Source: Paragordius varius
Taxonomy: Eukaryota > Animalia > Nematomorpha
DNA: 64,000 nucleotides
Direction: 5' to 3'
Assembly: GCA_964247055.1 (NCBI GenBank)
Contig: OZ176056.1
Location: forward strand, 6,138,001-6,202,000
Part shown: positions 11,653 through 59,587 of the stretch, one piece after another
How positions within the stretch are numbered: position 1 is the first letter of the stretch
How the letters are laid out: every line of letters starts with the position of its first letter
Notes under the pieces: model-generated
What the model saw: only the letters and a program-made list of their open reading frames with translations
What the model was told of the DNA's origin: nothing
Database searches by the model: none
Position numbers and translations under genes: made by a program

Positions 11653-23623
<11,971 letters not shown>

Positions 23624-26088: not shown

Positions 26089-29000
26089 TCAATTGCCCCT
26101 GAAAGGACAACTCTCTATTTTTTTCTTGAAATTAATTTTGGGTGGAGTAAAAATGTCCCTTCCTTCCATATTGAAAAGATTGACTTGATAATTGGATGCA
26201 TTTGGTTCATTGTAGGTACAATTAATTTTTTCAACAAATATGGCATTATGAGTAAACAATCGAACTTCCCTGCGATTCCATACATACAGCTCCAACTTTG
26301 AATTTGTTTGAATCAATTTAAACTAAAAATGTTATAATGTAAAAAATATCATCATTTTTAGATAAATTAATATTCATTTTATCATTTTTGAATGTGAATA
26401 GTTATTATGAATCCATACGTGAACAGTAACTAACCTCTTATAGATATAACCAGTCATAATTTTTAAATAAAAGCTTATTACGTGATAAAATAATTAAATT
26501 TACAAAACCTCAAATTAAATTGTGTTAATTATAAAAATTTAGTGTAACATATATAATTAAATATTTTTGATTGCCTAGTATACAATAATGTGCTGTATTA
26601 GCCGTTATTTTTGCCTGGTTTAATACCTTAAAAAATTTATACAGACCATGCTTTAACACCAAACGACAAATATTTTTTGCCAGACTACCATACTTTTTTT
26701 AATTTTTGTTATATAAACTCTGATTATAAAATTTATAATTGATTGTGTCCCTACTAAATAACTATTTCATACTTTACAGACAATTATTATTAAAAAAATC
26801 CACTTTAAATAATTATAGCGATATCTTAAAAATATATTGATTTTTGAAATTTTTAATGCAATTCCTAACAAGCGTTCCTAATTTCGTCAGTGCCCAGGGT
26901 AAAATTGATTTTATAACAGTCGTAAAAATCTAGAATCTTGGTTGTAATTATTCGTGTATGTTACCAAACGAATAAAATATCTTTTATCCATTTTATCGAC
27001 TTGAGATCGATTTTCATTTGTGGAATCAATTCTAGTTCATAATTATACTCTTTTATTTGCAATTAATATATTATTCTAAAATGCATTTTTATTATTTGTT
27101 AATAATATATTCATACGTTTGCTAAATTAATTCTTGTATTTTCATTCACCTATGGAATCCTTAAATTTTAGCAATTTTAATTTCTTAATGCCGTCAAGAA
27201 CTTCAATCCGAAAATCTTTCGCTTACTTTTTCTCGGCTCTATTTTTCTTTTTCAGTCCGCAAATTAGCTTAAAAAAGTTTGTCATTAGTAGATATTTAAT
27301 ATAATTAACGATATGGAACAAACTTTACATTGATATCAATATTTTGAATAAATACATTTCAACACAATTAATTACTGGTGTAAATTTATGGATACCTAAA
27401 CTCTAATGCCCAATCGTATATAATCAATATATGCTGCAATCATAAATAATGCAAGCTTATTTATTAACAATGACAATATATTTTAAATTGAAACTATACG
27501 GACTAAACGTAAAAATATTAGGACAATTTTTTTTTCGAAAGACAATCATTTTCCCTAAAATATCCTATAAAAATAATTAGAAATACAATGGTAAAATACA
27601 TAATTGATTGTGTTACCAATTTACATATCTAGCTTAAACTTTTCAATTAAAAACAATCAGTTATAAAAAACAACAATTTAAAAAGTATGGTAATATCTTA
27701 AATTGTCCTTATAATTTTACGTTTTGTCCTAAAATTTTATTTTTAAATAAATTCATTTTACCTGTTGATCATTTTCCAAATCATAAGCAATGTTTGTTCC
27801 CGCGCCTGATCGAAGAACGATTTGACATTTTCCAGTATATAGGGGATATGTTATGTTTACAACAAACTGTTTTATTAAGTAAACAGAATCAATTTATCAT
27901 GACTTTAATAATTATTATGATTTTATATTAAGAGAGCAGATTTTAGAAATGTATATCAACAGTCTCTAAACTAGAACGTGGAAATGGTTTTTGATAAAAG
28001 TAACAGTTCTGATATGGTAAAAACTTATTGAGTTATATATTAAAAAATTGGCCAGTGTGGTATCGAAAATCAGATTTTCAATATAAAGCGTATATTTTGT
28101 GTTGCAGATCGCTGAATTTTATTAATCGAAAATGCGGCTCGTGAATTCATTGTGTGGGGGTAAGATAATCGTTTCTCTATGGTGGTATTTTTAAACATTT
28201 TTAAGTTAAGCTTACAGCTATTTTAATACTAAGTCCAATAAACAGATTAGTAATATAAACCTAAACCTTTGTATATAAATTTAATTAGTTTGATTAAGTG
28301 ATCGGCCTATTTGTTTAAGGGCTATCCAGAGAATGTCATGTTGAACGGTATCGAAGGCTTTAGAGAAATCCACGAAGCATAAGTCTAGCTCATTTTGGAG
28401 GAATAAAAGTGGGGGGTCACATTCTGGCGACCCTCCACAACGCAGACGACACGGTAATCTTAGCCAATTCACAAACAAGCCTTGAAAACAGTCTCCGAAC
28501 TTTTAAATATGTGTGAAAAAAATACAATCTAACATTAAACCTTAACAAAATCAAATCAACTTTCTTTATTCTATGACTCGCTTCGGATTAATATCGAAAC
28601 AATTCAAGTAGTTAACAAAAACACATACCTTGGAAGCATTATCAACAATTCAAGCTCAGTTCTTAAGAAATGCATAGCCATTGCCTAAGGCGCTCTAGCC
28701 TCACACTACAAGATATGGAAATCTCATGACATAAATCTGAAAACAAAAATCCGACTAATAAGCACATTAATTCCTATCATGTTATACGGATGTGAAAGCT
28801 GGACAATTTGAAGCGAAGCTAGAAAAGAATAAATGCTTTTGAAATGTTTTGCTGGATAAAAATACTTGGTCTAACATGGAAGGACAAAATAAAGAACATC
28901 GACATCGTAGACAAAATCAACGCACAAACACTGCTACGAGGAAAACTAATTAATCAAAATTCGATTACTTTGGACAGACATTTCGAGGACATTCTTAAAG

Positions 29001-32000
29001 GTTATTATGTTAGGGAAAGTAAATAACAATAGAGGAAAAGGACGAAGACGTATTCGTTGGATAGATGAAATCTTATCACTTACCAAAATGTCACAGCAAA
29101 AAAGCCTACGACAGAACCGAGTGGAGGAAGTTTTCTAATAAAATCGCAAATGGTTGATAACCGACTACAAGCTTAACAACAACATAATGTATAAAGTATA
29201 TTTTATATAAAATATTTAAAAGTATGTGTTAAATCCTAATAATATAAAATGTACAGAGGGCCTTTAAATCTTATAGTATATTCATTCGATGGTTCCTATG
29301 TATATTTTAATCATTCCTTTATATAAATTAACGAAAATCTACATATGTATCCTCAGAAATGATGAGGGGTTCTTGATTATTGGTGAAGATATCTATTCTA
29401 CTAGCCATTGCATCTGAAAAAAATGTATAAATATGCCCTCTATCGGTAGAAGTAAGGTTAATTCTTGAAGGGATAAGCCACCAAATAGTAGGTGCTCCTA
29501 TAACATAGGGATGTTCTTCTACCTGAATTAATTGATTTCTATAATGCAGTTACAGTAAAATTTTGAAAATATAATGACAAAACGTAAAAATAAAAAGACA
29601 AATATTTTTTTCATCAAAAGACAATCATACTTTTTTACATCTTAATTTTTGACATGTAAATTATTTAATTACAATTTTTTACCAAAATACATCTCTGCAT
29701 CATACTTTTCCCAATCCTAACCAATGATTTATTTATATTAAAAAAGAATCTAAAAGTATGGGTTGTTTTTTATAAAAAATTGTCTTTATATTTGAACGTT
29801 TTGTTCGTATAATTTCAATTTTTACTGTATAATGTTTTATGTTTATGACATATGGCCTATACATATAACTCCTTTGATTCATAGCACAATAAAGCTAATA
29901 TTATCTCTATAAGTTATTATCTCCTCGAAACTAGCTCCTAAAATTTATTAGTGCCCATCAACTAATGAGCTTGTATTAGTTGTCATGCACGTTCCAAATT
30001 CTTAAAGTAATTTTTTTTTATTTCGAGTTGTTGATGACTTCCCACATATTTTTTGCATATTTTTTAAAAATAGAGAAATTAAATTAATTTATGTGAATAT
30101 TTGTTATTTATATATAGATTGATTTATCCATAGTGGTTTTTTATAAACACTAAGAAATGTTTTAAAATAGGATTCCACGTGGTTATTAGCACTAGCTAAT
30201 ATTGCTTGTAATTTAATGTTATTGCGCCTCAATATTTGACAAGGTATCCTATTACCACATGATTTTTTTCCATCCTTAACTACTAAAAGTATGGATGATT
30301 CAAAAGGCACATTTCTTAAGATGTGGCCTAAGATATCCAATTCTTTTTATTAATGTACATGTTTGTATTCATTTTTTTTTAAAATTTCGGTGTGTTAGTC
30401 CTTATTGTTCCATTTGTTTTTTTAGAGTTTGAAGTTTATATCTAATTTATAAATGGACCAACTTTCAGAACAGTAGGTTGTAACTGGGAAAACTAACACT
30501 TCCGAGCACATTGTTGTAAGAGTTATGGAATGGTTTTTAAATTATTTTATGTGCTGGTGCTAGAGCAAGCATTATGCACTGTTTAATATCATAAAGAAAA
30601 TCTCCATCATTCGTTATCATTAATCATTATATCTCTGTGTTGCTATAGTTAGATTTAGATAGCAACCATAGGAATCTTGTATGAAATGGTTTGTCTGAGA
30701 TTATGTATAGTGAATATTTTAAAAAGCTAAGGGATATAGAATACAACCCCGTCTAACCCTTTTCTTTGTGCGGAACCATCCCAATATCTCCAAAAGAAAA
30801 TACAGGCATCTTCTGTAACAGTAAAGATTGTAAATGAAAATTCGAAATGGTAAGTAATATTTTAGAATTCATGCTTTGATAATTTATCATGAATAATGTT
30901 ATCAAATGCTACCGAATAATCAACATAACGAATAAACGACGGTTTTTATGTTTTTGCTATTTTTCTCTGATCCACTTAGAATACCAGCTTTTATGATTTA
31001 TCTATTTCGTGGTTAAGTTTATTGAAATTCGGAATTGAATTATTTCAACGTTTTTTTTGAAGACTAATTGTTTAGGACGATCCATATAAAGTTTAAAAGG
31101 ATCTTTAAACAACCCTTTTTAGTCTTGGGAAAAGGTATGATTATGCTCATAAAATTAAGGTTAAACGAAGGTGCCAATTTATCTATTTAATTATTTTCAA
31201 CTCTTGATGAATTGATGGCGAGAGTGATTTATGACAATCAACAATTTAATGCCCATTGCACTACCCCTGTACTAAATTTTGATTATTATTTAAGATTTAG
31301 ATGATTTTTTGCGTAGTTCATCCAATTATTCTTAATGAATTTTTTTGAGATGCTACATTGACTCTTGTTTTTCTTTTTGTTAATTTTGAAAGGATGTATG
31401 TATCCTCTTTTAGGGTATTAGCTAGATTTGTAGATTTCCTTAAATTTGTGTGCTTTTTTTAAATAATATTTTTTGTTAAGCAGATGCATCAGATATATGA
31501 GATAAATGGCTTTAAACAGTGGTTTTCACATTGTTTTGGCTTAGCCACTGTTTTCCAACATTTGTGGGTTCTTTAATGAGAGTTTTGAATCTTTTACTCT
31601 GGGATGCTGGATCAGAGTCCTACCCCACCTCCTAGTGGTGATCCGGCGGGCAACGTCAGCGTTTTAATGACGGCAAACGGAATTCAGGCAAGTCTAACAG
31701 AAGGGTCGGAAGGAGGAGACTAACTTCCGACAAACCGATACAATCGGCACTGACCTAGTTGGCCAAGTAGTTTATGCACGGGGCTGTGTAACCGAAGGAG
31801 GGTTTGAGTTCTCGGGGTCTGGCCAACCCATAACTCACAGTGCACATTGCCTATTCAATACAATCATGAGGGACAAAACTACTATTTATTCAAATACATT
31901 ACAAAACAGTTATCCTACAACAACGATCAGAGAAAAAAGGGTGGGACCAGGCTCTAGTAACAGAAGCACCCAATAAGTACCCTGGATGTCAACGGCCTGA

Positions 32001-35000
32001 GGTGTGAGCTCCGCGAGATTGAACTTTCAGTTGATGCGGAAAAGAAAGGCGTTGACATTCTCGCAGTACAGGAGTGCCATAGATGCAGGGGATTAGACAA
32101 GGATGTCCTGTCATACAGGCTCCTTTCTGGCTCAAGCGATAAGGCGGGCACACGTGGATGCGGGTTCCTTATCAAGAAAGATATCGCCGAGAATTGCCAA
32201 TTCGAGTACATTAGTCCAAGAATTGCTAAGTTGAAAGTAAATAAATATGATATAACGATCTTTTCGGTCTACGCCCCGGTCGAATCGGCAAAGGTTGTTG
32301 AAAAATCGGAATTTTACGATACTCTTGGTGCTCAACTGAGATAAATAAAATCACGATATAGGGTCCTTGGTGATTTCAACGCTCAAGTGGATCGATCAGG
32401 CGAAAGTAATGGCATCGGGAAAATAACGGTAATCTCCTCGTTAAGCTATGTAATCTACATAGTCTTAAGTATGTTGGAAGCTTTTTCCAGAAACCTTACT
32501 GGAAAAAGGGCACTTAAGTACACCCTAGTGGCAAAGGCTTTACCCATGATCGGATACTAGTTCACAGGGGAATTAGCTTCTGAGTTATGGAGTTGAAAGT
32601 CATCTTACGAGATTGGTTACAGATCACAGGTTGGTGTTGGGAAAATTTGTCAGTGAAAGGCAAAGAACTCGTCCAAAGAAGAACCTACCTTGACAGAGGA
32701 GGCCATAAAGACGAACTTCTAACCCTGGTCACCAACAAACGATTGAGAGACAACTTTGAACACAACGTAAAAGAGAGGTTACGTTCACACAGTGGGGGGA
32801 TTGATGTAACAGCGTTAAAGGATGCATTAAGCAAATGTATTCCTACGTTTCCGAAAAAGGGATTGAACGTGTGCCCGGGTCCAAACCAAAAAGAAATTCT
32901 TGACATTAACGCTAAACGAAAACTTCGTAAAGCAATCTGTAGTGGAAAAGCTACTCAAAGTTATAAGGCTTCACTCAAAGCCCTAAACAAATCTCTAAAA
33001 CAAAAGATTTACGCCCTTAAGTCAGAATGGTTAGAAAAGAAGGCCACGGAAGGGGAGCACTGTCTAGTGAACAACAATTCGAAAGGTATCTCTGTAATTC
33101 TTGATGAGGTGGTAAGCATTTGCAACAAGTGGCTGGGCACAGGTAGTGCAAGTAAGAAGAAAAGTTCGTGTGCTAATGTGGATGATATGGCAGCTTACTA
33201 TGAATCAGTGTATCGTAAAAGTGGTGGTGACATCTTTGGTGATTCATTGTTTGATAGCTGTGTGGAATGTAACGATAGTGTCCCCGGAAGAGATAAAATC
33301 GAACGGTCCTTGAGAAAAATTAAATTCGGAAAGAGTAGTGGTGAGGATGGTATAGCCCTGGAATTGTATCATGCGGGTGGTGAATCGGTCCTTGAATTCC
33401 TGATAGGCATATTCGAAAGGGTTTGGGAGACGGGCTGCATTCAGGAAGATTGGAAAGTCGCGGAAACATGTCCGATATATAAGGGCAAGGGTAAGACGAT
33501 TGATCCCAAATCATATCGTCCCATCTCCTTACTCAACATTGATGGGAAGATCTTCAGTGGCATTCTGAACGACGATTGCAGACGTTGTCCAAACAAGTGG
33601 TGGGTGATTACCAATGCGGGTTCAGGGAACGGAAATAAACTTGTGACCTATTATTCACGCTTCGAAGGTTGCAGGAAGAATCTCGATAAGTTAACACAGG
33701 TGCACTGTGTCTTCATTGACCTCGAGAAGGCGTTCGATAGCGTCCCTCATGGGCCATTAATGGACTGTCTGGGAAAAGCGGGCTGCGGTCCGAAGTTATT
33801 AAGGCTTATAGCCAATTTGACGTACGGCAATAAAGCGAGAGTAAAGTTGAAAGGCAATACCTCGCCTTGGTTCAAACTTGAACGGGGCGTTCGGCAAGGG
33901 TGTAGGCTCTCACCTGCCCTGATTAACATCTTTCTAGAGTCATGCCTTCGTGAAGCTGATCTTCAGCTGGAAGGTATCAGTATCACTCAAAAAAATCCAT
34001 CCCCTTGTAGTCAAAGCACTCCTTCAGTGAAGATACTAGCATTCGCAGATGATATCGTGCTAGTCAGTACAATCGATGCGAACTTTCCTTGGCATTGGAA
34101 CGTTTAAACACCACGTTTAAAAGTTATGGTATCCTTATTTCGATGAGGAAATCGAAAGTCTTGGAGTTGTCGGGCTCTATAGACAACCTACCCATAATGC
34201 TAGAAACGTCTGTAATTGAAGACGTAGAAAGCTTTACGTACCTCGGATCTGAGATCAGTCGGAAGGGAGGTGTCAGCGCGAAATCATAAGGAGAATCGCA
34301 AGAGCTAGGTTGTTGCGTAAAGTAAAACCTATCTTGGAAAGCAAGAAAATTGCTAACAAGATAAAACGGCAGCTGATAATGGGTTTCGTGGTTCAATCTC
34401 TATACGGCTGTGAAACGTGGAACACTACTAAGGCAGACGTGAGTAGGTTGGATAGTTTTCTCAATGACTGCATTAGAACCTATGTTGGTGTTTCACGATC
34501 AGATAAGGACGTTCCAAGTCTCCGGTCAGCGGTGAAGCTCCCTTAAGTGAATAAACTTTTGGGCAGTAGAAGGCTGCGCTGGTTCAGCATGCTATGCCTC
34601 GGCCAAACTTCTGAACTAGCAGCTCAGTTGTACGATGGGATGCTGGATAAAACGGTCGGAGCAAGCTGTAGACAAAGATTGGAGCACTGTGTCCAACGAG
34701 ATCTGGACTGGTTTGTGCTAAACAAAGGTAATAATGGGTTACTTCGTATACACGAAGTCGAATGTCGAAATCTTGACGATTTCAAACGGGCAGTTGTGCA
34801 GAGTGGGAAACTACCTGAGTTTGCGCATCCAGGAAAGAAATCGAACGACTTAGCTCCTGTCAATAAATTACCTGTACAAACAGTCGCCTCAGTATCCTGT
34901 TCAGTTGATGGTTGTACGGTTAAATTCTCAAACGAAAAGAATATGAAAAGACATGTTACGGTCTTTCATATGGCCAAGAAAAGGGGGGAGAGCAGCAATC

Positions 35001-38000
35001 CATACCCATGTGGGGTTGCTGCAAATCATACAAGACTCTAGGGTGGCTTAAAAAACACCAAAACAATGTCCATGGAATATCGTTGGGAACGATGATTCCA
35101 GTCCCGGAGGGTAAATCAGTAACGGTCTCAGTCAGATCTAAGTTATACCCCAGCAAACCTTCCTCCACGTGGAAAGGAAGCCTTCAAACATGTGATGGTG
35201 AGTTCATGCGTCCGATAGGAGGATGTGGGCATCGAACAGGCACCTACAAGGGTATTGAAAATCATATTTAATCGAAACATGATATGTCTCTAAGAGCCTG
35301 GATACCTTGACATAAATAGCTTAAAAAATCGTTACGGTCGAGAGGGCGCAAACCAAAAAACCTTTCTATAAATATTTCTATACATATATTGCGTGGGTAT
35401 GAATGAAAAATCATTATAAAATTTACAAAAATAATATAAAAGGTGAGCGCTTCTCATAAACGACAAATTGGGAAATTACAGTTAGTATTGTGGTCTCTAA
35501 TTGTAATGGATCTAAACCGCCTCATGAGAGGCGTAAGTTTTTTTTTTGACTGATTGTGTCAGAGTTACTTCGAGATATCGTTCTTTGTAATATCTGAACA
35601 ATTGTGTCGTGATAAATTATTTTCTAGTTATGCTTTGAAAATTTTAACGTTTAATCGTTTATTTCCTCAACGTAGTTGATAGCTTTTGCAGTTTGCTTCA
35701 GGGTAAGTTTTGATGGATAATATTTCATGTAGAAATATATAACTAAAATAATAGTCGATTTAGTTTTCATCGTATTATTTAGAGCATATCTAGACTTTCT
35801 TCCATTTTTTTGTCTTAGCCCGACTATTTGTAGATTTACTTACTTGTATCATTTCTATTTTAAGTACTTTTCTTGGAATTCGATAATGATTTGAGGTTCT
35901 TATAACATATTTTTAATATTGTCTCAAAACCTTTAAAAAATAATGACAGCAATGGAATATCAAAATTGTTATTGATAAAGAATAAAAAATGTAAGCGGTG
36001 ATTATAATGTTAAAAATAAAGGAAAGAGATAAAATAAAAAATATAATTTAAGGATCAAACATATGATAAGTAAAAGCAAGGTGGTTTAAGTCCACCAAAT
36101 ATCCCATACAGACGGAATTATTGAGTTATAAACAGGGTGTAGATGCGGTTACTATGCATGTATTTACCCAACAATTGGGATCAATAAGTGTTGACTAACT
36201 GTAATTTTTAATCATAACATCAGACATTTCTAAGAACCTTCCCATGGTGTTAAAATTAATGTTTGAAGACGTAACGATATAGTAGGTATGGCGCTGTGAC
36301 ACTGTATGGTGTGCATGAGTTGGATTGAAACTGCGCAAATATTATATTATTTTCATTCTCTAAGCGGGTTCCTGTTATTCACAAGTCCTGATATAATTTT
36401 ACGTCCTTAACATTTTTACAGAAAAATAGATAAACTATATAATTTTAAATGTTTTTTGAAGTTTTTGTGATCCTAGCCAATAAATTATTACAGCAATTGA
36501 AAATATATGTTGCATAAATAAAACTTCGAAATGATGAAACTTTTTACTAATGAAATAAAATATCCATAAATTTAATTTATTTAATATTATCTCGTCATAA
36601 ACATAAAATTTGTTGTTTTAGAGAATTTTTTGCCTTCACAGAGCAGTTATTTTTGTTCTTACCTTATTTAGCATTTGCGCTTTTAAAAACTTTCATATGA
36701 ATAAAAATAGTTTAGTGTTTCTAAAAGTTATTAACATGATTATTAGTACAAAGAGTTAAAAGGTTGGTGTAAAAGTGGTTTTAGACAAAACTGATTATGT
36801 AATTTTCCACATGCCAAAACCTCCAGAATCACATTTTTAAGAGATAAAGTACTTTTAATTATGAGAAATTTTATTATTTTAGACGCTTTACTTTATTATT
36901 TTATTTAAATGCAACATGACCCCTAATTTTTAAGGATTCTGAAGGCAGATGAGTTATCAAATCCAAAAATACTGTCAAAAGAAAACTACATCTTTTGATC
37001 CTTAATTTGGCACCTGTTTTACTTTGGGCTTTGACCCATTTTATTACAGACTTATTATTTTTTTATTTATACTGTTCAAAGTTTTCCATGTTAAAATGTA
37101 ATTGAATCCTTAGATGGTTGATGCATAAATATACTTGATTAATTTCCTTTTATTTATCAAATTATAGATTCCAGTTTCACTAATAGTTTCGCATAGCCTG
37201 GCAGTATTCATAAAAAGATCTAAAGATATTACTAAAAAATTACCTGAATTCCATATCATGGTCTTGGTCGGAAATAATTTATTCATATATTCCATCGGGC
37301 TTTCTAATAAATAAATTGCATATGTTTGATTTTAATCAATATAAAATATATAACATTTTTTTTAAAAAATCACCACCTTTTTAACCAAACGCAGCATTAT
37401 TTTAAACAAAAGTATTTTTAGTTTTGTTTAAATGATAAATATTGCGTGTTGCCTTTGCTGAAAATATGTTGCGTTTGGATGAAAAAATGTTGCGTTTGCT
37501 TGAAAAAATATTGCGTTTGCCTGAAAAAGTGTTGCTTTTGACCGAAAATAATATATTGTTTTGGCTCTTAGGTGCACTTCATTTAACACTAGGACTATCT
37601 AATAAAAATATCCTGATGAAATTATATATATTATCTGTTGGAAATTATATTACATTATCATGATTAAAATGCACTAGCTTACTTAAAGTAAACGTAAAAA
37701 TTCCGAGATTGCGCAATATAAATTTAATAAATATGTTTGATGGCAATAAAATTATTTTGAAATACTTAGCCAAAAAATTTAATTCAAAAACAAATTTTTT
37801 TAACAGAATATGCGCAAATCATTTTCTGATATGGATTAGATCCCTCAATATGTACTTACTTAAATCACTTGTAAGTGTCAAAACCAAAAGCATCAATCCT
37901 TAAACGTTTTCTATATATATAAATTTCATCGGGATAGTAATTTGTGGAGATTGTTTTATTAACAATATTGTAATTTCTAAAGTGCCAGCCATGAATGCAA

Positions 38001-40682
38001 CATAAAATCAATTGGGCGTATTAACCATAAAAAATTACTGTATCCCTGAAAATAGTCAAATTATGTATAAATTTTTAAAGCATTTAAATATTATATGTGC
38101 TATATTGATAGTAACTACTTCTTTAACTTATATATCTAATTTTAGTAATACATTTTACTAATTTGTTTGCAATTTGGATTAAAGGGTATGTCTTGTTTAT
38201 AATTAACACTAAAGCCACATGCCCACCATATATTTAAGGCAAACAACAACCTGGTATGGTACATTCTTTAACAACTAAATAAGCTCGAATCTCCTTGTAA
38301 TTATAATCAAGGTCGCTTGGATTTGAGTAAATTTTGTTTTGGAACATAAAATGCGTTAAATGACTTATTCGCTTGATCGGTAAATCAGTTTGGACGTAAT
38401 AAGTTTGATGTGAATGGAGATGTTTCTTGTATACTTCGTATAATTCATAGTGTTTCGTAGAATATTGGACAAATCTTAACTATGAACCAAAACAAATTTA
38501 ATTTTATTAACAAGTAACCTGATAATATTTTTGGGAATAATTAGGCTAAAAAAGTATTAGATTGATTTGCCTTAAGAGTCGTTTAAAAGAGTAATTTGAG
38601 ATAAGATAAATATTTAAGTATGTTATCCATATACCTATATTTTTAAATAAGAATGTATTTTTGGTCTATTAAATCTTTTTTATATATTTAATCTTCTAAT
38701 TTAAGACACCTCTTTTTATAATTAACGCATAAAAGCAGCCGAGCCCAAAAATTACCACTGGTTTTGTTCGAAGCATTTATCACATAAATATTCATATACC
38801 ACGGTGCACGGCAAAAAATTATTTTTAATGAATCATATATCATTCGATACCTAAAAGTTTCAATATAATGATTGAAATGATGTATGCGGTAAAAAAGTTA
38901 TTTTATTTTTTCTGATATTACCCAAAATCAAAAAATCGCATTTTAATTGCATATTAGGTCAAATAAATTAAATACTATAATAGATGAAAACGCGTCACTA
39001 TATTATTTGTTTAAACATAGCATAAGATTTTAAATGGAAAGTATTATTAAAAAAAGTTAGTATTTTTGGATGTCCTAGAAAGACTTACAATAATATAAGC
39101 TAAAAAATCGCATTTTGGCGTCATATTTGAACATAAAACTTGTTAATATGCGGTAAATTTTAATTTTTATTAAAACAATCATATAGTAACTCCATATATA
39201 GAATTTATCCAATATTCTCCTTCAAAAAAATTTAAGCCTTATATGAGGAAGAAATTTTTTCTATATTTTGGAGCAAAGCAGGAGCGTATATTTTTTACAA
39301 ATAAAATATATATATTATAGATATCTTTTCCCTACAAATCGATGCAAAAAAGATTTATCATCCCACTTTGATAAAAAGGAATTATTTTACTTGAAAATCT
39401 TAATTTTATACTTGGCGCCATTTAGGCTTTTAATACCGGCTTTGGAAAAAATATCCCCACATCAAAAAATTGAGTCGAGAGATCCATTTTTGTGCATCGA
39501 ATTGTATGAAATGATATTAATTTATAAAATGAATGTTTTGTAAAAACTATATGCAGCTTCCGCTTTGGTTCATATAAAAAAAATTTCTTCTTCATATAAT
39601 TAAATTATTTTGAACAAATATTGGTTAAACTCTATATATGGTTTTAATATATGATTGTTTTAATAAAAATTGAAATCATTGACCGCATAACAAGTTTCAT
39701 GATTCAAATGTGACTCCAAATTGCGATTTTTAGCTTATATTCTTATAAGTCTTTTCTAGAACCCTCCGAAAAAATTTAAAACCTTTTTCAATTATTTTTG
39801 CGTTTTGCTTTATTAAAACAAATAATATTTAGTTGATGCGTTTTCATCTATTGTATTTAATTTTATTTGACCTAATATGCGAAAAAAATGCTTTTTTAAT
39901 GTTGAGTAATAACAAAAATGATAACTTTTTTTCTAGTATTTTAACCGCATATTTCATTTCAAGATTCATCTGAAGCTTTTATCTATCTAATAATATATGG
40001 TTCAACTTTATTTATCCCCATTTTTGCAGCACATTGTACCAATTTAACTTGTATTGTTAAAGCAACTGTTCCCTTTTAATGCAATTATATTTATTTTAAT
40101 GTTTCAAATATCTTAAGCAAAAATTTTATATGATAGTTGTTAATTTTTTCGAATATGGTCAAATGTCACCAATTATTAACATCAATTATTATTACGCGCA
40201 ATCTGATCCAATAGAAAGGGACCTTTTGAGATACATTTACAGCTCGATTTCACCCTCAAACAATTCAAATTCACCTTTGAAGAATTCAAATTCACCCTAA
40301 AAATCAATTATATATTTTCGGGCTAATATAACTCCTCATTAATATGAAATATATCTAAATGGCATAGTTAATTATTTTCTAATTTTAGACGAAATTTCAT
40401 TTTTTCAAAATATAAAAAATATAAGTATTTTTTAATCTTAAAAAATACTTAATTTATTTTAAGGTGAATTTGAATTGTTTGAGGGTGATCTTGAATTGTT
40501 CAAGGGTGAATTTGAATTGTTCAAGGGTGATTTCGAATGGTAAATGGTATATATCAACAATAGAGAATCGATAAAATATGTAAAAATTGGATCAAAAGTT
40601 TTAATTTTTTATTATCTTAACTTATTGTGCGCAAAGAGGTAAATTTTCGTTTCGATTGTTTGTAAAAATGTTATACTTTCTA

Positions 40683-40736
<54 letters not shown>

Positions 40737-41316
40737 CTCCTAATGATAAATTTTATTCCGAATTTTGAGTGCAGAGCAATTAAATTATTAAAGCAAAATA
40801 TTTTAGGGGTTTTTAAAGTATCCACAAAATTGTTGAAAATACCTTGATTAATTGTCTGGCTTGTATAAGATGGTGTTCATAAAAGCTACTCATGTTTAAA
40901 CAGTCATTTGGTAAGGCTATAGTACTGAATATTTCAGCGAGGGCGTTGAAACCATTTCGACCACATACCATTATCAAGCGATCAATGGGGTCCTCAACAT
41001 CTATTATAACCTTTAATTCAAAAGAGAAAATTAAATCCTGTTTTTTAATCATAATATTACTATAAAAACACTAGGAATAGCAAGAATATGGAATTACTTT
41101 AGCGCGGGAAGTTAAAGCATTCGCATGATATGTTAGTTTCTGCTTATCACTAACAACATATTTATAATATGCGTTGGGCTCGTTAGTAAAACTCTTTTTG
41201 TCAAGATTAACATTCCACCAAATGCTCCTGTTATTCCTTATTATCCCGTATGTGACAGAGGTACCTGGTTTTCTAATAAGATTTATTATATCTCTATATA
41301 TCCAAGTGAATAATCC
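26089..41316 (-). CDS. Uncharacterised orphan gene G1, at least 431 aa, 5' end unresolved. Exons: 41316-41098, 41010-40843, 38479-38251, 37303-37244, 37219-37135, 29538-29343, 27866-27762, 26322-26089
   Basis: Eight GT-AG exons splice into one open frame (1296 nt). Each has a homologous exon in G2; the seven downstream exon pairs have matching phases and the same or near-same length. The acceptor of the most 5' exon is the least certain. Confidence 0.8.
28290..29185 (+). mobile_element. 5'-truncated RTE LINE with inverted 5' segment
   Basis: The sense part from ~28395 reads GIKVGG..LHNADDTVILA...TYLGSII...LYGCESW...RGKGRRRIRW and ends in an AACAACAAC tail. 28290-28392 carries CFVDFSKAFDTVQH on the opposite strand. 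Confidence 0.8.
29553..29827. mobile_element. MITE family M, best-preserved copy
   Basis: TA|CAGTAAAATTTTGAAA ... TTTCAATTTTTACTG|TA: TIRs with TA target duplication. Confidence 0.8.
31606..31690 (+). ncRNA. Candidate HDV-like self-cleaving ribozyme at the LINE 5' end
   Basis: P1 GCTGGATC/GATCCGGC; P3 ACC/GGT; L3 TCCTAGT; P1.1 CC/GG; then GCAAC as in HDV; P4 GTCA/TGAC; J4/2-like GCAAA. P2 pairing is imperfect. Confidence 0.6.
31606..35370 (+). mobile_element. Near-full-length RTE-type non-LTR retrotransposon (APE + RT + C-terminal C2H2 fingers), frameshifted
   Basis: GC-richer island. APE motifs DILAVQE, SVYAP, LGDFNA and TDHRLV; RT motifs FIDLEKAFDSV, GVRQGCRLSP, LAFADD and FTYLGS; then LYGCETW, RRLRWF and C2H2-like fingers. 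Several stops and frameshifts. The 3' boundary is approximate. Confidence 0.9.
37370..37553. mobile_element. MITE family F3 with 21-bp repeats (TGTTGCGTTTGCTTGAAAAAA)
   Basis: Four to five tandem 21-mers plus an inverted partial arm. Related copies at ~60955-61050 and 61525-~61780. Confidence 0.65.
38799..40036. mobile_element. Long-TIR foldback element, possibly Tc1/mariner-like
   Basis: Arms ~38800-39300 and ~39540-40036 are inverted homologs (e.g. GCATATTAGGTCAAATAAA vs TTTATTTGACCTAATATGC). The right end is GCACATTG|TA. A second copy lies at ~62541-63690. Confidence 0.8.
40232..40549. mobile_element. MITE family F1 copy
   Basis: Inverted 21-bp arrays; right terminus TAAATGGTA|TA. Confidence 0.8.
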
Positions 41317-41405
41317 CTAGAGCCGACACCAATTTGCTTATGCTTTAAACGACTACCCGTAGCATTTAAAACAGTTATATTAATTAAAAATATTTTTATC
41401 AATTA

Positions 41406-46476: not shown

Positions 46477-46477
46477 A

Positions 46478-49400
46478 CTAGCGTATATCTCGGGCTGCTG
46501 GACCTCTTGGGGTGAGGAGCAAATTTTTTCGCCTTTATACGCGATCTGCAATCCTATTCAATTTATTATGATCTCATATTTTTGACGAAAAAAGCCTCAA
46601 AAACATATTGTTGAGAGAGTTTAATAGTGAAGCCCCAAGCACACCAAATTTTAACAATTTTAACAAAAAAATGTTTATTCAGAAATGATCTTAGTATAAA
46701 AAACATAAGCAATTATTGGGAAACGTGCAAAAAAAGCTTTCTTTTTGACATCGGGTATGGTTTCTTAGATTCTTTGAAAATTAGGTCCAAAACCACGCCA
46801 TTTTTGTATGGCTTCCCAGTTTTAAACCTGTAGACTTCTACCCATAGACCTATACCATTTCCCAGTCCAAATCCCAATCAATCGAAACGTTTTCCCAGTC
46901 AATAACAACATTTTACCCATCAATAAAAACGTTTTTCCAGTCAATAAAAACGGTTTTATTTTTGATGATAAATATCAAAATAAGAATCTAAAAACAATTT
47001 TTAACCACTTTTAGCGTAATATATGGAGATAATTTTTAATTAAAAACACAATTATCGAATGACAATTTTTCCAAGTATATTCCAGTGCACACTCATTAAT
47101 GACTTATTCTTTAAATGTTATATTTTTTGGAATTTGAGTTAAGATAATATATTTTATTTTATCGATGGTTTGCATTGATATTTGCGGATAACTTAAAAAA
47201 TCTATAGTTACGGAGGAATATATAAAATTTATAAAAATATATCATTTTTATCACAAAGGTCATTTAACACTTTATATTGGATCTTAAACATAAATTTTAT
47301 GCTAATTATATAATATTTAACATTTGGTTTAGCGGGGGCCTAAGGCTGCCTTCCGAGTATCTTTGTGCGGGCCCCAAACAGTGGAAAACTATATGCAAAA
47401 ATATGCCCACAAAATCTTAGTATTCATATTTCTTACGCAATTATTCTGAACGAGTCTATTTAATTGGTACGAAATTTAAAAAATTGTTATATTGTGTTTG
47501 TATTTTACAGTCTTATCAATCGAAAATTATGAGAATGCCTGTATATATTTTGGGTGGGGAACCATGTGCTTTTTGATTTAAAAATGCGGCCTGCGAAGGC
47601 ATTTAGTTACACCCTTGTTTTAGTCAAATATCCTTTTTATTAAATATTTTTAAATCAAAAACGTTTATATAAAAAAATATTTTCGCTTAGATTTTTCTGA
47701 CAGTATTTTTATCGACAAACCGTACATATTTAAAAACTAATTGAAGCGTTCCGCAAATATTAATGCGAACCATCAATAAAATAAAAAATATTATCTTAAC
47801 TCAAATTCCAAAAATATAACATTTAAAGAATAAGTCATTAATGATTGTGCACTGGAATATACTTGGAAAAATTGTCATTCGATAATTGTGTTTTTAATTA
47901 AAAATTATCTCCATATATTACGCTAATAATGGTTAAAAGTTGTTTTTATATTCTTATTTTGATATTTATCATCAAAAATAAAACCGTTTTTATTGACTGG
48001 GAAAACGTTTTTAATGACTGGGGAAATGTTTCGATTGACTGGGAAAACGTTTCGATTGACTGGGAAAACGTTTCGATTGATTGGGAAAATGTTTCGATTG
48101 ACTGGAAAAAGTTTATTTAGACTGGGAAATGGTATATATGGAAAAAGCGCTGAGTTAAATTTGCGTTTATAGGAAATATTTGGGATTATCTTTGATACCA
48201 TCGTCTCATGGGTTTTTCGAAAAATACCTCAGCACTAACTAATCGTTATTGATGGAGTATTTTTAGGGCATAAGGCCTCAAATTAACGGCTAATAAAAAA
48301 CCCTGACCTTCTTTGCCTAGTTAGGGGTAATATTTGGAGCTTTTAATGAGCTCATATGGCTTCATAAAATTTCAGTAAGTTGGCTCCAAAACGCAATTGC
48401 TATATAGTGCGCAGTTTTTGGCGGGCAGCTCCTTACCCATGGCAGAACAAAAAAGCGTTGGGCAACATTTTTTCCTTTATATGGGGAATATCTGGAATTA
48501 TCATGGATTTATGTTCCTATTAGATTCATAGGTTTTCTGAAATTTACCAAAGGCATGCTGCATCTATATGGTGACGCAGTTGATGACGGGTAGCCTCCTA
48601 CCCAGAGTCCAATATAAAAAAGACATTCGATAAAAAAATTTAAATCATCATTTATTCCATATGTTCCTAATAGTTTTTGGAAGAATGGCTTAACTAAATA
48701 ATGTTCAATGATAGCCCATTTTTTAGTGCGTAAAGGGCCTAATTAACGGCTAATTTTAAAAAAACCGCTCGACATAAATTTTTGCCTTTTACCCGGTATT
48801 TTCAGGCCCATATTAAACTTATGTGGCCTGATAAGTTTTCTGAAAAAAACTCCTAAACAATGCAACTTCGATATATCGCTGCAGTTTTAGGCGGGTAGCT
48901 CCTTACCCAGTTGATAGAAAAAATCGCCTGTTAAAATTTTTTGTTTTTTACGGAGAATACCTGGAATCATGATTGATTCTATATGCTCTCATTAGTTTTT
49001 GGAATTGCTTCAAAATTTAAAAATCATTCTATGGTGCATTTTGGAGAGCGTGAAGGGCCTAATTAACGGCTAATTTTAAAAAACCGCACGGCCTAAATTT
49101 TTGCCTTGTACGGGTAATATTTTAAGCAGCTATTATACTCAAATGGCCTGATAGGTTTTCTGAAATTTAGCCCCAAAGGCACGCTATTTTATGACGCCGC
49201 AGTTTTTAGCGGGTATGTACCTCCTTACCCATCAGCTATCATCAAAGAAAAACTTGACTAAAATTTTTGACTTTTACAGGGAATACCTGGAATCCGTATT
49301 GAATTTTCACGGTTTTATATCTTGGGCTAAAAATAGATTCAAAAAACTATTCTTGTGCACTTATTTTTTGAAAAAATGGCATTTTACGGGGAGAGCGGGT

Positions 49401-49729
49401 AAAAAGAGGGCCTAAATTAAAAAAGCGAGCGGAGTATGTTCGCCGCAATCGAAAATAAGAAAAAAAAATCATATTTGAAATCGAATGGTTCAACAGGTTT
49501 TCCGGGATATTGTCTCAAAGACACGATTTTTGTGGACTTCTATTTTTTAAAAAAACCGTTTTTCTACACGGGTGGGCCCGACTGGGGCCCTAATTCAAAA
49601 AAGGGCGAAGCTATTGTCGGGGCATTCATTATTTTTTTATATTTTTTGATATTTGAATTTGAATGAGTTTACCGGTTTTCCGGAAACAGATCACAAATCC
49701 ACCCCTTTCCATTTTTATAAATATATAGA
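46478..49729 (-). mobile_element. Non-autonomous Helitron copy B, interrupted by foldback element 46853-48134
   Basis: Minus strand A|TCTATATATTTATAAAAAT ... TATACGCTAG|T. The monomer array is collinear with copy A. Confidence 0.85.
46853..48134. mobile_element. Foldback element F2: ~350-400-bp TIRs with terminal 21-bp arrays (GATTGACTGGGAAAACGTTTC), TA target duplication
   Basis: TA|TACCATTTCCCAGTC ... GACTGGGAAATGGTA|TA. The empty site GACCTATATG is present in Helitron A (~41849). The arms are highly similar. Confidence 0.9.
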
Positions 49730-49863
49730 TTTGCTTCATCACCTTTTGGATAGTTTATGGTCTCGAGGGATAAAAACTCTAACATTCTAAAAGTATTTAA
49801 GGTAACACCGCGTCAAAAATCGGGGGGTATAAAAAAACCTAATGAAATATATATATATATATT

Positions 49864-50959: not shown

Positions 50960-50963
<4 letters not shown>
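49864..50963. mobile_element. ~1.1-kb palindromic element, family P, flanked by (TA)n
   Basis: The arms (~500 bp) are inverted from the termini (GATAGGAAAATG/CATTTTCTTATC) to the centre (TTAGGCATGAT/ATCATGCCTAA). Loop at ~50350-50460. Confidence 0.8.
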
Positions 50964-51002
<39 letters not shown>

Positions 51003-52274: not shown

Positions 52275-55200
52275 TTAACACATAGCAAGCTTCTTCTTCA
52301 AAATGATCATAGGTGGAGTATTTTGATCCATACCCATTAGGTTAAATAGATTAACTTGATAGTTTGATATATTTGGTTCATTGTAAGTGCAATTAATTTT
52401 CACAACAAACGTATTTAAGTGATTAAAAATTTTATTTTCCCATTTATCCCAAACTTGTAAAGTAATTCCCTCATGAGTTTGTTTCAATATAAACTATAAA
52501 TATTTATACATAGAGTGTTAAATTTAATTTAAGATGGGCTCTCAAAATTTAAAAAAAATTTAGCGTTCAAAGTCTTATAACAAAAATAAATCAAAGCAAA
52601 AATAAATCCAAGAAAAGCTTAAAATGAGTTTTTTGGATATTACTTTGCTAAAAAACAAAAGATTTTTATTTTTTACATACGTTTGTTAATCTAGGAAACA
52701 CTTAAAATGGCTTATAATTACGATATTTGTTTAAAATAAATTATGTAATTTTGTATTATAAAAATGTTTAAATTATTTAAAAGGATCCAGGTATAAAGCT
52801 ATTTAAATTTTCAATTTGCTTATAATCACAGTTTAATAAAGAGATGTCAAACTTTTTTGCACATTTGACATTAAATAAACCACACCTTAAAATTTAAAGG
52901 GCTTAAAATATATTAATAAAATACTTTTTATATTTGTTTGGCTACGCATTCCAATTTGCAGCTTCCGTGTATTCGCATCATAATATTTTTATAAACTTAA
53001 AAAAGGCTTTTTCAAATTTTGGGAATTTTTGTTAAAGTTTTAAGGTTTTATTTTTTATTTTTACTTAACTAGGTTGGCTATGGTGAATTTATAGCGTTTT
53101 AGACTTTAACTAAAAAAGGTTATGCCCATTATACTGATAAAGCTGTTTTTTTAGATTTCTCGGCGCTTCTTTCATAATTTAATTCCGAAGGCCATCACAA
53201 TAAAATTGAGGCCCAAGCACTTTTAGGGGTTACCAGAAAACTGACACACATTTTAATATGTAAAATCTTGTGTAATTCATAATTATGATTCAATAAAAAA
53301 TAAAATCTTTCTAAATCCAAATTTGCCTGCTATTAAAGGCTATAGTATAAAAAGGGAGGATGGATGCCTTTGAGATATTAAATATTTATAAAGGAATAAC
53401 CATTATAAAAATAGTTTTTTTATAGTGATTATAATCTATATAGATAGTTACCCTAACAAAAACTACTTAAATAGTAATAATTCCTACTTCTAAAAAATAA
53501 ATTTGCAAGCTATATTTTCGATTTGAAAAATCGAGCGTGCGGCATTTAAAAAGACATGAACACGTAGGCACACATATATTATTTTTCAAACAAATTATTG
53601 TTAATTATCCCGCTGTCAAAATCAGATTTAAAATGTTATTTTTCTTTGAGTGCCGATCCAAGTGATAAATTTGATATAGAATAAAGAAATATTAAATTAA
53701 TTAACCTTATATTTAAAAATATAAAATTCGAAAATTTCTGGATAATGGCACAAAATTTTAATTGATTAGAGGCACGTTAACATGTCTAATGTATATACCT
53801 GCTCATTATTATTGAGATAATAACCAAACATATTTGATCCCGAAGTTTTTTTAAGAATGATTTGACACCTGCCGGTATACATGGGGTACGTGATGTTAAC
53901 TATAAACTTACATATATAATATATTGATTATTTACATAAAATTAAAAATTTATTTTGATAAGTTGCTAGAATTATCAATTATGTTAATTTTGGTTTGCCC
54001 GTTCTGCAATAATATCCCATATAATTATGTTGTAATAAATAAATGTACGAGAATATCATGGACCTTTTGATATAAGTCTACGAATAATAAAACTCGGACC
54101 TGAATTTTTATTAGTAAAAGCATATGTTTCATATCACAAAATGACTAAAAATATCTTTAACTACTTTAATAAGCCAAACCCCATAAGGTCTGAATAAGAA
54201 GTTAATATTGATACATTAATTATCTATATATTTATAAAAATAGAAAGTGGTGGCTTTGCGATCTTTTTTCCGGAAAACCGGCAGAACCATTCAAATCCAA
54301 ATGTCAAAAAGGTATAATTAATGAATGCCCCGATAGCTTTGCCCTTTTTATTAATGAGACCTTCTGCTCAGGCCCACCCCGTGTTAAAAACGAGTTTTTT
54401 TGAAAATCGTGTATTTAAGACAAACCCCCCCACCCCCTTCCCTCCCCGTAAAATGCCACTAATAATTTTTGAATCTATTTTTCGCCCAAAGTATGAGACC
54501 GTAAAAATTCAATAAATATTCCAGGTATTTCCTGTTAAAAGGCATAAATTTTAGTCAAGCGTTGTTGATGATAGCTCCTAGGTAAGAAGATACCAACTAA
54601 AAGATCCGTCATATGGAAATAGAGTACCTTTGGGGCTAAATTATACCTATCAGCCATGAGCTCAATAGCTGCTTAAAATATTACCCGTAACAGGGCAAAT
54701 TAGGCCACGCGGTTTTTTAAAATAGACCTTAATTAGGCCCTTCACGCTCTGATAAATTCGCCACCATAGAATGATTTTTTAGGCAATTTTTCCAAAAACT
54801 AATGGAGAATATGGAATCAATCATGATTCCAGGTATTCTAAAAAGGCAACAATTTTAATCAAGCATTTTTTTAAATCAGCCAATGTATAGGGAACTACCC
54901 GCCTAACTACAGCGCCACCATATCAAAATTGGGTTGTTTGAGAGTTAGTTTTTAGAAATCAGGCCATATTTTTTAAGGGCCTGAAATATTACACGTAAAA
55001 GGTAATAATTTAATCGACCAGATTTTTTAAAATAATGGTTAATTTGGCATACAAAATGTGTGGCTTTGGAGCTAATTTTCAAAAAACTTAAGAAGCCATA
55101 CAAGTTCAACAGAGGATCAAATATTATCAATTAAAAGGTTAAAATTATAGTGTACCGGTTTTTTCCTTCAGCCGTAAATTTGAGGCCTTTACATCAGTAA

Positions 55201-56333
55201 ACAATATATTAGAATGCACCGTTTTAAAATCCTATGAGATCATAGCTATTAAATAATGTTTCGATATAATCCACATACATATATGGATCATTTTATTGAT
55301 CCCTTTTTTCAAATATCACCCCCACCTCCCTAGAAGTCCCAGAGACTTCCTCAGCGCAGCAGCAATTTACGCTAGTAATTTTGTAAATTCGCCGTTTTTG
55401 TTATAATAATTTTTCAAAATGTTTAATTTATAATCGTGTAAAAAAATGGTTCATCATTTATCATGTCACCCAAAGTTTTAATTGGTTGTCCTTTTAAAAT
55501 TGTTTATTAAAAAAAGTTGGAAATATAATTTGAATTCAAATATGCAAAAAATATGTATGATTTTGTGGATCATTATGTTTAAAAATACCTTCGATGTTTG
55601 CAAAGATTTTTTATTTAATTAAAACCTATATAAAGCACATATAATTATAATTTCTGAAATTAAATCTAAGGCCAGGAATTACATTAAAAATAGCAAAGAG
55701 GCCTGATGGTATAAATTGTAACCAGGGCGGTTTAAAGTGAACATAATTAAGTTTGTGGAAAAAATTAAGGTTATATTAATTTATGCTATCAAAATCGGTT
55801 TTCGTTTTTTTGTTAATTTTGTAAACACTTTCATCACTAATCAAAATCCTACTTAAGTCCAATATCCACCTGTTTAAATTAGTAATGCCATATTATTTGA
55901 TATCTATAAATTTAACTAGATATTAATATCCATTAGCTTTTACAAATAACTGGAAAAGTATAAATCTTTTGTGCATAAATGATTTAAAGGATTTTTATCA
56001 ACCTATAATTTTGCTGTTTTGCACTCAGAGGCTAGAGGGAGCACCTTGCATAGTTGAAGGGGCGCTGGATTTTATTTTTTTATTTTTAAAAAAGGTGTGT
56101 AAAAGTTATTATTTTAGATATTACATAAAAAAACACATTTATAAGTGCTCAAGACCACGGTTTGAATTTGATTATTAATGACTAGGGTCGCATAGATCGG
56201 GAGGAAAAGAGCGCCATTACGGGGCAACAGAGGACGGAAATGCAAGCTACGCCTCTGGTTAAGCTACTTTTATTACCATGTTTTTTAGAATTTGTATTTT
56301 TATTAATTTGTGCCTTAATTATTGTACTGTATT

Positions 56334-56385
<52 letters not shown>

Positions 56386-59300
56386 CATATATGTATTCTA
56401 TCATCTATATAACATAGAATAACTCTATTATTATATTGTGTTTTTTTATAAAACATATATAATTTGGTATAGTTACGAAAGTATTAATATCCAAGATAAA
56501 TGACTCTAGAGGGGCAAAAAAATGGCCCGCTTCCTCCATATAACTAGGTACAAAGGTATAAACATGGCCTATGTCGGAGGAAATTAATTTGATTTCCGAA
56601 GGCAGGATCCACCAAAGAGTAAATAGATTATGTATATGTGGATGAAGCTTATATTGAATCAATTGCCATCTAAATTTTGTGTGATACAGTAAAAATTTGA
56701 AATACAGAGACCAAACGTAAAAAAAATGATTTTACAACACAACACCATACTTTTTTGCAACCTTAATTTATGACTGATTTTATTATTTATACTTTACAAT
56801 TAAAAATGAGTTATAACACAAAAATCTAATTTAAATAATGTGGTTTTTTGAAAAACATTTGTCTTTATGTTTTTACGTTTTTTTTATTTCAATTTTTATT
56901 TTAACACATATGTATATTGTAAAAGATATAAAAAGACATACTTGATGTGAGTTCTTCGGTTTATCATATTATAAATACCGGTTTGATTTACAATGTCACA
57001 AATTTTATCCGTATTCATATATACATCTAAAGTACAATGTAATTGAGGGACTTACCTTTATTCCAAGCCATAGTTTTTGCGGGATATGTTCCACCCATAA
57101 AATGACTATAGTTTGCTACAATTAATATTTTAGTAATCGAAAAAATTATATAATAAAATGAGCCAAAGATGTGTGAAATTGTCAAACAAAAAATATGAGG
57201 TTAGTTTTAGAAATATTTAGTAATTTTAATGTGAGAGGGTGGTTGGTAATTTCATAACTTAAAGTTTCTAAGATGCAAAATATTGAATGAATTACTAATA
57301 TATTTATTTTAAAATATATTATTGGTTCTGGTTTAAATAACACATTCGGAAAAATGGAACAAGAATTCTGGTTGAAATCTTTTTTTTAAATATAACCGTT
57401 CTTATTAACCCGTTATAAATTATACTTCATATATGAAAATTAAAACCATATAGAAATCAATTTCACTGCAAGATCTAATAATACCATTTGCAATTTAAAT
57501 TCACCGATCAATTCAAATTCGCCCTTAAACAAATCACCCTCTAACAATTCAAATTCAACCTAAAATGTATTATGTGTTTTTTAAGATTGAAATTTCCTAT
57601 ATTTTTTATATTTTTAAAAATGTTGTTTGAAATATTGAAAAAATAATGAACTATGCCATAAGATTTCTTATTATCATGAGTTATATTAGACCAAAAGCAG
57701 ATAATAATTTATTTTTAGGGTGAATTCGATTTGTTCGTGAGTGAATTTAAATTGTTCAAGGGTGGATTTAAACTGTTATTAGTAATACGACAGTTTATAA
57801 TGTTTATCATTAAGAATAATGCTGTTAATCTTTAATTTTACTTAATCAACAATAAAGTAATTATATCCCTGATTAAATTAAATAATGAGCGTTATATATA
57901 TATATATATATATATATTTAATAAACAAACTTTACGTATTATATCACATAAACCGATTATTTTATCAAAAAAAATTTATTCAGTTATCTTAGAAGACAAA
58001 GTATTCGCTTCTAGATTAATTGCAAAATAAAATTATTATATATGTACTTTGATGACATTCGTCAAAGACATAGTAGGCCTTCAATTCCCGTTCGCCTGAA
58101 AGTGGATCAACAGATAAATTTGATTGTTGAAACACGAAATGTGTTAAATGAGTTATCTCTGGGTGTGGCCAAAAATCAGTCCGTACATAAAATGTTTCAG
58201 AATCTATTTCTTTACTGTAAACCTCGTACATTTCAAATCGTTCATTTGGAAACTGAACAAATCTTAACTAATAAATACAATCATTATTGATAATAATCTT
58301 TGCTAAAAAAATGTAAAAATAAATGTGTTTAAAAATTCAAAAAGTTCTTTATTCAAAGGCTATTTTCTTATAATACAAACATATTACCAATTTTAACCGA
58401 AAAAAACTATTTTTGTAGATTTCCATCTATTTTTATGTATTATATTATATTTAATTTTTTTTATAAATTTAAAACGTAGGATCCTGCTAATTGGATGAAT
58501 ATAGCACAATGAAAAATAATTTTTTAATAATTTTGGGTAACTTTTAAGTCATTTCATTTGGAATGACGTTATATATTATATATTATTTAAAAATAGTTTT
58601 TGACAAATTAATTCTAGTTGTCAAATCAAAAAATATTTTTTTTTTCGATTTCTGCTTTGTTGTTTTTGAAGTCTTATTAAATATATGGTATATGGTATAA
58701 AAATGCAAACATTTATCTTAATTTTGCATGAATTTCCAAAATATAATGGTTTTTATTTAAATTATTTTTAAGGAACAAGGCAAACATTATATCAAAATAG
58801 GTCCAATCTTTTTTTAACTATTTCAAACCCCAAATATTATATATAATATATTTTAAAAAAATAGTTACTAATAAATTTGAATATTACTTTACGTAACCGT
58901 CCACCATGTATTGCATGATGTTTATAAAAATCAATCATATTTAAACACGTATTGGGTAAGGGTAATGGGCCAAATAGTTCAGTTAATGCATTATGGCCAT
59001 TTCGCCCACACACACGAATCAATCTTTCTACCGGCTCCTCGATATCGACTATAACCTATACATGTATTTTAGTAAAAAATATATCTATGTTTGAAACAAG
59101 GGTGTATCCAACAACCAGCCTTTTGAGAAAGTATATATGCAGCCCCAAAAAAATGTGGACATTCTTAATTTGCAAAATTTATTGAAATTGGTATGTTCCT
59201 TAAGCAAATTTTATAATAAAGCCTACCCAAATGACAACGATATAGAAAAAAAATGCTATATTGTGTTTACATATTATCGTGTAATGTTAGAAAATTTTAT

Positions 59301-59587
59301 AAAATATTGTTAATCTTTATGCCTACTTCAAATGTGGCCCGCGAAGTCCGTTGTGTTTACACTCTCATTTAATATAAAAAATGATAAAATTGTATATTTT
59401 TACTTTGGCATTGCATCTTTGAGCATTTGTTTGATAAATGAGTCGATATCTTTCATGAATTAAATATTGATAATATTGAGTCTCATTAGTTGTATGTAAA
59501 GTTGGTGCAATGTCGAGTTTTTTTAGTTCCATATTCCACCATATACTCTGATTATCCCTTACTATGGCGAAACTAATGGGTCTTTGA
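52275..59587 (-). CDS. Uncharacterised orphan gene G2, paralog of G1, at least 412 aa, 5' end unresolved. Exons: 59587-59404, 59055-58888, 58267-58048, 57115-57056, 57026-56942, 56669-56477, 53906-53799, 52493-52275
   Basis: GT-AG exons in consistent phase. Three exons are identical in length to their G1 counterparts (168, 60 and 85 nt). Shared motifs: S-I-W-W-N, VCGRNG.NAL.E.F, LRFVQ, NITYP.YTG.CQI and KINCTYNEPN.SNYQVNLFN. Confidence 0.8.
54223..55375 (+). mobile_element. Non-autonomous Helitron copy C (short array)
   Basis: A|TCTATATATTTATAAAAATAG ... TTTACGCTAG|T: canonical 5'-TC and CTAG-3' ends between A and T, no TSD. Confidence 0.88.
56687..56900. mobile_element. MITE family M copy in a G2 intron
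   Basis: TA|CAGTAAAAATTTGAAAT...CAAACGT; the right end is degenerate. Confidence 0.65.
57482..57780. mobile_element. MITE family F1 copy
   Basis: Starts TACCATTTG; inverted 21-bp arrays; core shared with 14012-14310. Confidence 0.75.

Follow-up and report, generated by a model that had tools for sequence, protein, structure and literature searches.

The window analysed here, a stretch of 64,000 nucleotides (nt) from the nematomorph Paragordius varius (assembly GCA_964247055.1, contig OZ176056.1, positions 6,138,001 to 6,202,000 of the forward strand), carries two related genes on its minus strand, G1 (26089-41272) and G2 (52275-59587). Comparison of the open reading frames, in which splice sites were set by reading all three frames of each open segment and the exons were then joined by script, resolved eight exons per gene that pair one-to-one (Table 1). 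All introns (14 of 14) are of the GT-AG type, G1 and G2 agree in every phase, and the joined frames are open over 416 and 411 codons, respectively, each closed by a stop codon. An initial annotation, made from the letters of the window alone, had proposed two minus-strand multi-exon paralogs, and the places, lengths and phases that it gave for the exons are confirmed by these models.

The further paralogs for which that annotation had suggested a search were found as a second pair, G1′ and G2′, on the same contig (C7:5.736-5.775 Mb), approximately 420 kb from the window; exons 2, 3, 6 and 8, searched in six frames through the entire 110.6-Mb assembly, recovered four copies only, all on this contig. 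Compared with the second pair by tblastn, the exon peptides of the window gave cross-paralog E values of about 5e-9 to 4e-23 for exons 1-3 and 6-8, and weaker values for the short exons (0.006 for exon 4 and 8e-6 for exon 5). A match of the genome search on C3 is a leucyl-tRNA synthetase and was set aside as chance. DNA alignment places the two pairs in one collinear duplicated block of approximately 40 kb (collinear segments approximately 74-95% identical, gene bodies 88-95%), which covers both genes, their introns and approximately 4 kb upstream of G2, and stops just before a profilin-like gene. The two tandem pairs arose by a recent segmental duplication of approximately 40 kb. G2′ is intact except for the loss of one codon; G1′ (L010-L012, C7:5736078-5755724) is probably a young pseudogene, as judged from its sequence, because the donor of exon 2 has been lost (GT to AT) and exon 5 carries a 1-nt deletion. 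An RTE-type long interspersed nuclear element (LINE) in intron 5 of G1 lies within an unbroken 8.8-kb alignment between the duplicated blocks (94.9% identity), so that its insertion predates the segmental duplication, which is dated by a synonymous divergence (dS) of about 0.085.

All four copies possess a GT-AG micro-intron at the same codon, between exons 4 and 5, with a length of 24 nt in G1, 29 nt in G2, 24 nt in G1′ (L011:9547-9570) and 26 nt in G2′ (L014:2835-2860). The micro-introns of G2 and G2′ must be spliced out, because their lengths are not multiples of three and the frame would otherwise be lost. The similarity between G1 and G2 restarts exactly at the AG of this micro-intron.

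Amino-acid identity between G1 and G2 is 47-50% overall (50% over aligned residues). The initial annotation had described this identity as patchy, and the high stretches that it singled out are correct (33 of 56 residues in the VCGRNG exon, and 19 of 20 in KINCTYNEPNxSNYQVNLFN, a 20-residue stretch in the last exon); its description of the remainder as much lower was too severe, given that identity across the five long exons is moderate (39-59%). Nei-Gojobori estimates, computed with our own script from the joined coding sequences, gave a ratio of nonsynonymous to synonymous divergence (dN/dS) of 0.20 for G1 versus G2, with a dS above 2. Between the recent copies, the ratio is 0.17 for G1 versus G1′ (dS 0.090, amino-acid identity 96.6%) and 0.25 for G2 versus G2′ (dS 0.083, amino-acid identity 95.1%). 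A DNA run labelled as another, related organism also covers the locus, and the differences listed for G1 exon 1 (three of three) are synonymous third-position changes. On the basis of these sequence comparisons, we regard G1 and G2 as real, old functional paralogs that are held intact by purifying selection and that would form a small family so far known from this lineage alone. The earlier characterization of the family as fast-evolving is not supported, as these ratios describe a constrained protein.

Table 1 Features of the G1/G2 locus and its surroundings (positions in the window, unless a locus name is given)
Feature	Position	Strand	Description
G1 exon 1	41098-41272	-	175 nt; phase-2 acceptor
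G1 exon 2	40843-41010	-	168 nt; VCGRNG...LPNxCLNM...FYxHH
G1 exon 3	38251-38479	-	229 nt; LRFVQ...HLTHF
G1 exon 4	37244-37303	-	60 nt
G1 exon 4/5 micro-intron	37220-37243	-	24 nt, GT-AG
G1 exon 5	37135-37219	-	85 nt; GIYNLIN
G1 exon 6	29343-29538	-	196 nt; IWWLIPS...DRGHIYTF
G1 exon 7	27762-27866	-	105 nt; VNITYPLYTGKCQI
G1 exon 8	26089-26322	-	234 nt with stop; KINCTYNEPNASNYQVNLFN
G2 exon 1	59404-59587	-	184 nt; phase-2 acceptor
G2 exon 2	58888-59055	-	168 nt
G2 exon 3	58048-58267	-	220 nt
G2 exon 4	57056-57115	-	60 nt
G2 exon 4/5 micro-intron	57027-57055	-	29 nt, GTAAGT...AG
G2 exon 5	56942-57026	-	85 nt
G2 exon 6	56477-56669	-	193 nt
G2 exon 7	53799-53906	-	108 nt
G2 exon 8	52275-52493	-	219 nt with stop
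Tentative G2 first coding exon	61863-61909	-	MRNYLCICLFIYKIF; phase 2, GTAATA donor; candidate, unproven
RTE-type LINE	31606-35400	+	in G1 intron 5
MITE-like repeated elements, first	41408-43753		between G1 and G2
MITE-like repeated elements, second	48100-49750		between G1 and G2
21-nt tandem unit, first site	40249-40538		GGTGAATTTGAATTGTTCAAG; intronic
21-nt tandem unit, second site	57720-57777		GGTGAATTTGAATTGTTCAAG; intronic
21-nt tandem array	47923-48228		one frame reads VNRNVFP repeats
DEAD-box helicase	13000-17450	+	read from motifs only
Profilin-like gene	L015 2200-4100	+	read from motifs only; begins where the duplicated block ends
PAP2/glucose-6-phosphatase-like gene	L015 6200-7850	-	read from motifs only

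Repeats are found both between and inside the two genes. Elements resembling miniature inverted-repeat transposable elements (MITEs) occupy two sites between G1 and G2; the first is an insertion that the duplicated copy lacks. Introns of both genes contain a 21-nt tandem unit (GGTGAATTTGAATTGTTCAAG), which, on account of a word depth of up to 17,000 in sequencing run X5, is part of a very high-copy repeat. The other 21-nt tandem array of the window, one frame of which can be read as a peptide repeat, is no gene. Outside transposon insertions, the G+C content of the window is 23-33%.

At least one upstream exon is missing from both gene models, because exon 1 opens in phase 2 (that is, one base ahead of a codon boundary) and has no conserved start codon. 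Translated comparison (tblastx) of the regions upstream of G1 and G2 yielded nothing, scans from ATG to donor combined with hydropathy gave no convincing candidate, a donor-anchored comparison scored no higher than its opposite-strand control, and the identity peaks between G2 and G2′ were without a usable open frame. Two individual candidates were rejected: one for G2 (MNKTRADW...), just upstream of exon 1, in which indels break the frame in G2′, and one for G1 (MKIFLTIFF...), which in G1′ contains a stop and lacks the donor. Two listed candidates are intact in both G2 and G2′, and the one with the higher hydrophobicity is the tentative first coding exon of G2 in Table 1.

Given that neither gene has an identified start, G2 and G1 could be envisioned as two modules of one long gene, in which G2 exon 8 is cut between GCTAT and GTGTTA (phase 2) and spliced to the phase-2 acceptor of G1 exon 1. 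The phases are compatible by sequence inspection, and the modules share a strand and are separated by 11 kb; however, such compatibility has a one-in-three chance of arising, and repeats fill the 11-kb spacer. In both modules, no more than six codons separate the last conserved cysteine from the stop, which the recent copies keep. We consider a single two-module gene improbable, because a conserved stop closes each module and an AATAAA follows it 67 nt downstream, and we continue to treat G1 and G2 as separate paralogs.

All homology queries were single exons (56-77 residues) and consequently had low power. Pfam searches with 15 exon pieces gave scattered chance matches below the cut-off, with no family recurring across exons and no transposable-element domain, and profiles of exons 1, 2, 3, 6 and 8 against sequences of the PDB found nothing below E = 0.4. 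An exon-8 profile run with HMMER against 1.84 billion representative proteins returned 0 matches, a word-indexed search with an exon-3 profile gave no candidate, and a feature search of the ESM Atlas with exon 3 reached a top score of 0.81 or less and provided no lead. No relative was found in viral contigs (exon 8) or in prokaryotic genome contigs (exon 3), and literature searches uncovered nothing on the G1/G2 family. The single match of exon 2 in metagenome contigs (L017) is an out-of-frame pattern within a bacterial gene, that is, chance. Beyond this genome we thus found no relative of the family, an absence that is weak with exon-sized queries. Within this scope, the Pfam, PDB-sequence and protein searches agree with the initial annotation in recognizing no known domain, and they returned no known host or transposon protein family, the kind of match that it had named as contrary to its proposal. 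A gene derived from a transposon or virus was rejected on the basis of the copy number (only four, in one duplicated 40-kb block), the lack of a relative among the viral contigs and the lack of a transposable-element domain in Pfam.

The same query size is what leaves room for the explanation that we rank second, namely that G1 and G2 belong to a known fold, or to a known family of enzymes, but are so diverged that exon-sized pieces do not reveal it. Invariant His, Asp and Asn-rich motifs (HLTHF, DRGH in G1, WWN and SNYQV) resemble the remnants of an active site; nevertheless, no Pfam family recurs over the exons and the two leads that we pursued both failed. The first, Endonuclease_NS (PF01223, DNA/RNA non-specific endonucleases), was suggested by G1 exon 6, in which a predicted strand is followed by DRGH, letters that recall the His-Me finger motif. 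However, DRGH of G1 and G1′ is replaced by DIGH in G2 and G2′, and G2 is without the downstream Asn; no exon matched this family at E <= 1, and a genome scan at E <= 10 matched only C5:3257633-3258783, a true EndoG-like gene. The second, the endonuclease/exonuclease/phosphatase (EEP) fold (PF03372), was suggested by eye, as the order WWN ... THL ... D..N ... SNYQV loosely recalls motifs I-VII. Yet G1 and G2 lack the LQE glutamate, have SNY instead of SDH and show the wrong spacing (VCGRNG, SDLFMN and SNYQV stand in place of LQE, GDxN and SDH). Alignment of five exon profiles by hhalign with an EEP endonuclease alignment of 10 sequences, taken from LINE elements of this genome, gave probabilities of 0.1-1.7% and no collinearity, a test of low power at the exon level; LINE copies saturated the scan of the genome with PF03372. 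We consider a diverged member of a known family to be possible but doubtful.

Each protein is at least 410-416 residues long. Against an overall identity of 47%, G2 retains every cysteine (7 of 7) and tryptophan (6 of 6) of G1, and the two proteins have four N-glycosylation sequons (NRS/NQS, NIT, NCT and NAS/NIS) in common at identical columns. The conservation of NIT and NCT that the initial annotation had reported is therefore upheld and extended to four sequons, and its count of six conserved cysteines is corrected to seven. The number of sequons in G2 exceeds the expectation from composition (P = 0.017). No membrane-spanning segment was found in the known part (top 19-residue hydropathy 0.94-1.35), and no internal repeats were found, whether the protein halves were compared with each other or exon 1 with exon 6. 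Exons 3 and 8, each modelled singly by AlphaFold, are all strand at low confidence (pLDDT 57 and 60), which suggests that the protein is probably strand-rich; a Foldseek search with the low-confidence exon-8 model gave no match at E <= 0.001.

The reading that we find most likely, and in which we place about even confidence, is that the product of G1 and G2 is an exported, disulfide-bonded, strand-rich glycoprotein. Such a protein would fold outside the cell into a disulfide-bonded, N-glycosylated domain that may bind something rather than catalyse, and the near-identical stretch of the last exon is predicted to be its likeliest functional surface. Several observations weigh against this proposal. 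The regions upstream of G1 and G2 were searched for a signal peptide and a start codon, and neither was found. The number of sequons in G1 is not above the expectation from composition (P = 0.31), and Asn is a frequent residue in this AT-rich genome. The predicted strands come from low-confidence models, and exon-sized queries could easily miss a distant known family. Moreover, no run recorded as RNA contained the G2 stretch (word search), and three small presumed-RNA runs gave nothing over G1 exons 1-5.

The missing signal peptide and the sequon count of G1, together with the odd number of cysteines in the known part, would suit an intracellular protein with conserved cysteines that serve as metal ligands or are simply buried, and with sequons that arise as a side effect of AT-rich codons. 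We rank this explanation third and judge it unlikely, as no intracellular domain was recognized, the four shared sequons occupy the same columns in paralogs with a dS above 2, and G2 has one short hydrophobic candidate for its first exon. The RNA results, in turn, would be expected if the genes were silent relics that have lost their expression, as would the lost donor and 1-nt deletion in one of the four copies (G1′). However, a missing RNA signal does not show silence, as it depends on the stage and depth of the runs; the frames of G1, G2 and G2′ are open, and even copies whose silent-site divergence is only about 8% give a dN/dS of about 0.2. We hold silent relics to be very improbable.

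As an exported glycoprotein family, G1 and G2 would recall a generic class, the taxon-restricted tandem families of putative secreted proteins in parasitic worms, with which they share tandem and segmental duplication, conserved cysteines, common sequons, many introns with transposons inside and, at the sensitivity used, the lack of a homolog outside the lineage. They differ from this class in being under clear purifying selection, in numbering only four copies and in having no demonstrated signal peptide or stage-specific expression. A role at a host interface, as the initial annotation had raised, is speculation. It would be a long shot for the fold or family to occur in this worm lineage and nowhere else, and for the protein to be produced in the parasitic stage alone and exported to target the arthropod host, with the conserved stretch of the last exon as a putative binding site.

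In summary, G1 and G2 appear for now, from exon-wise comparison, to be an ordinary orphan family that matches no known protein family. Their practical value lies in a dated segmental duplication and in two well-defined gene models whose micro-introns would escape standard gene finders. Their fold might be new and, if the proteins are exported and stage-specific, they would be candidate effectors or surface proteins in a group of parasites that has hardly been studied at the molecular level.

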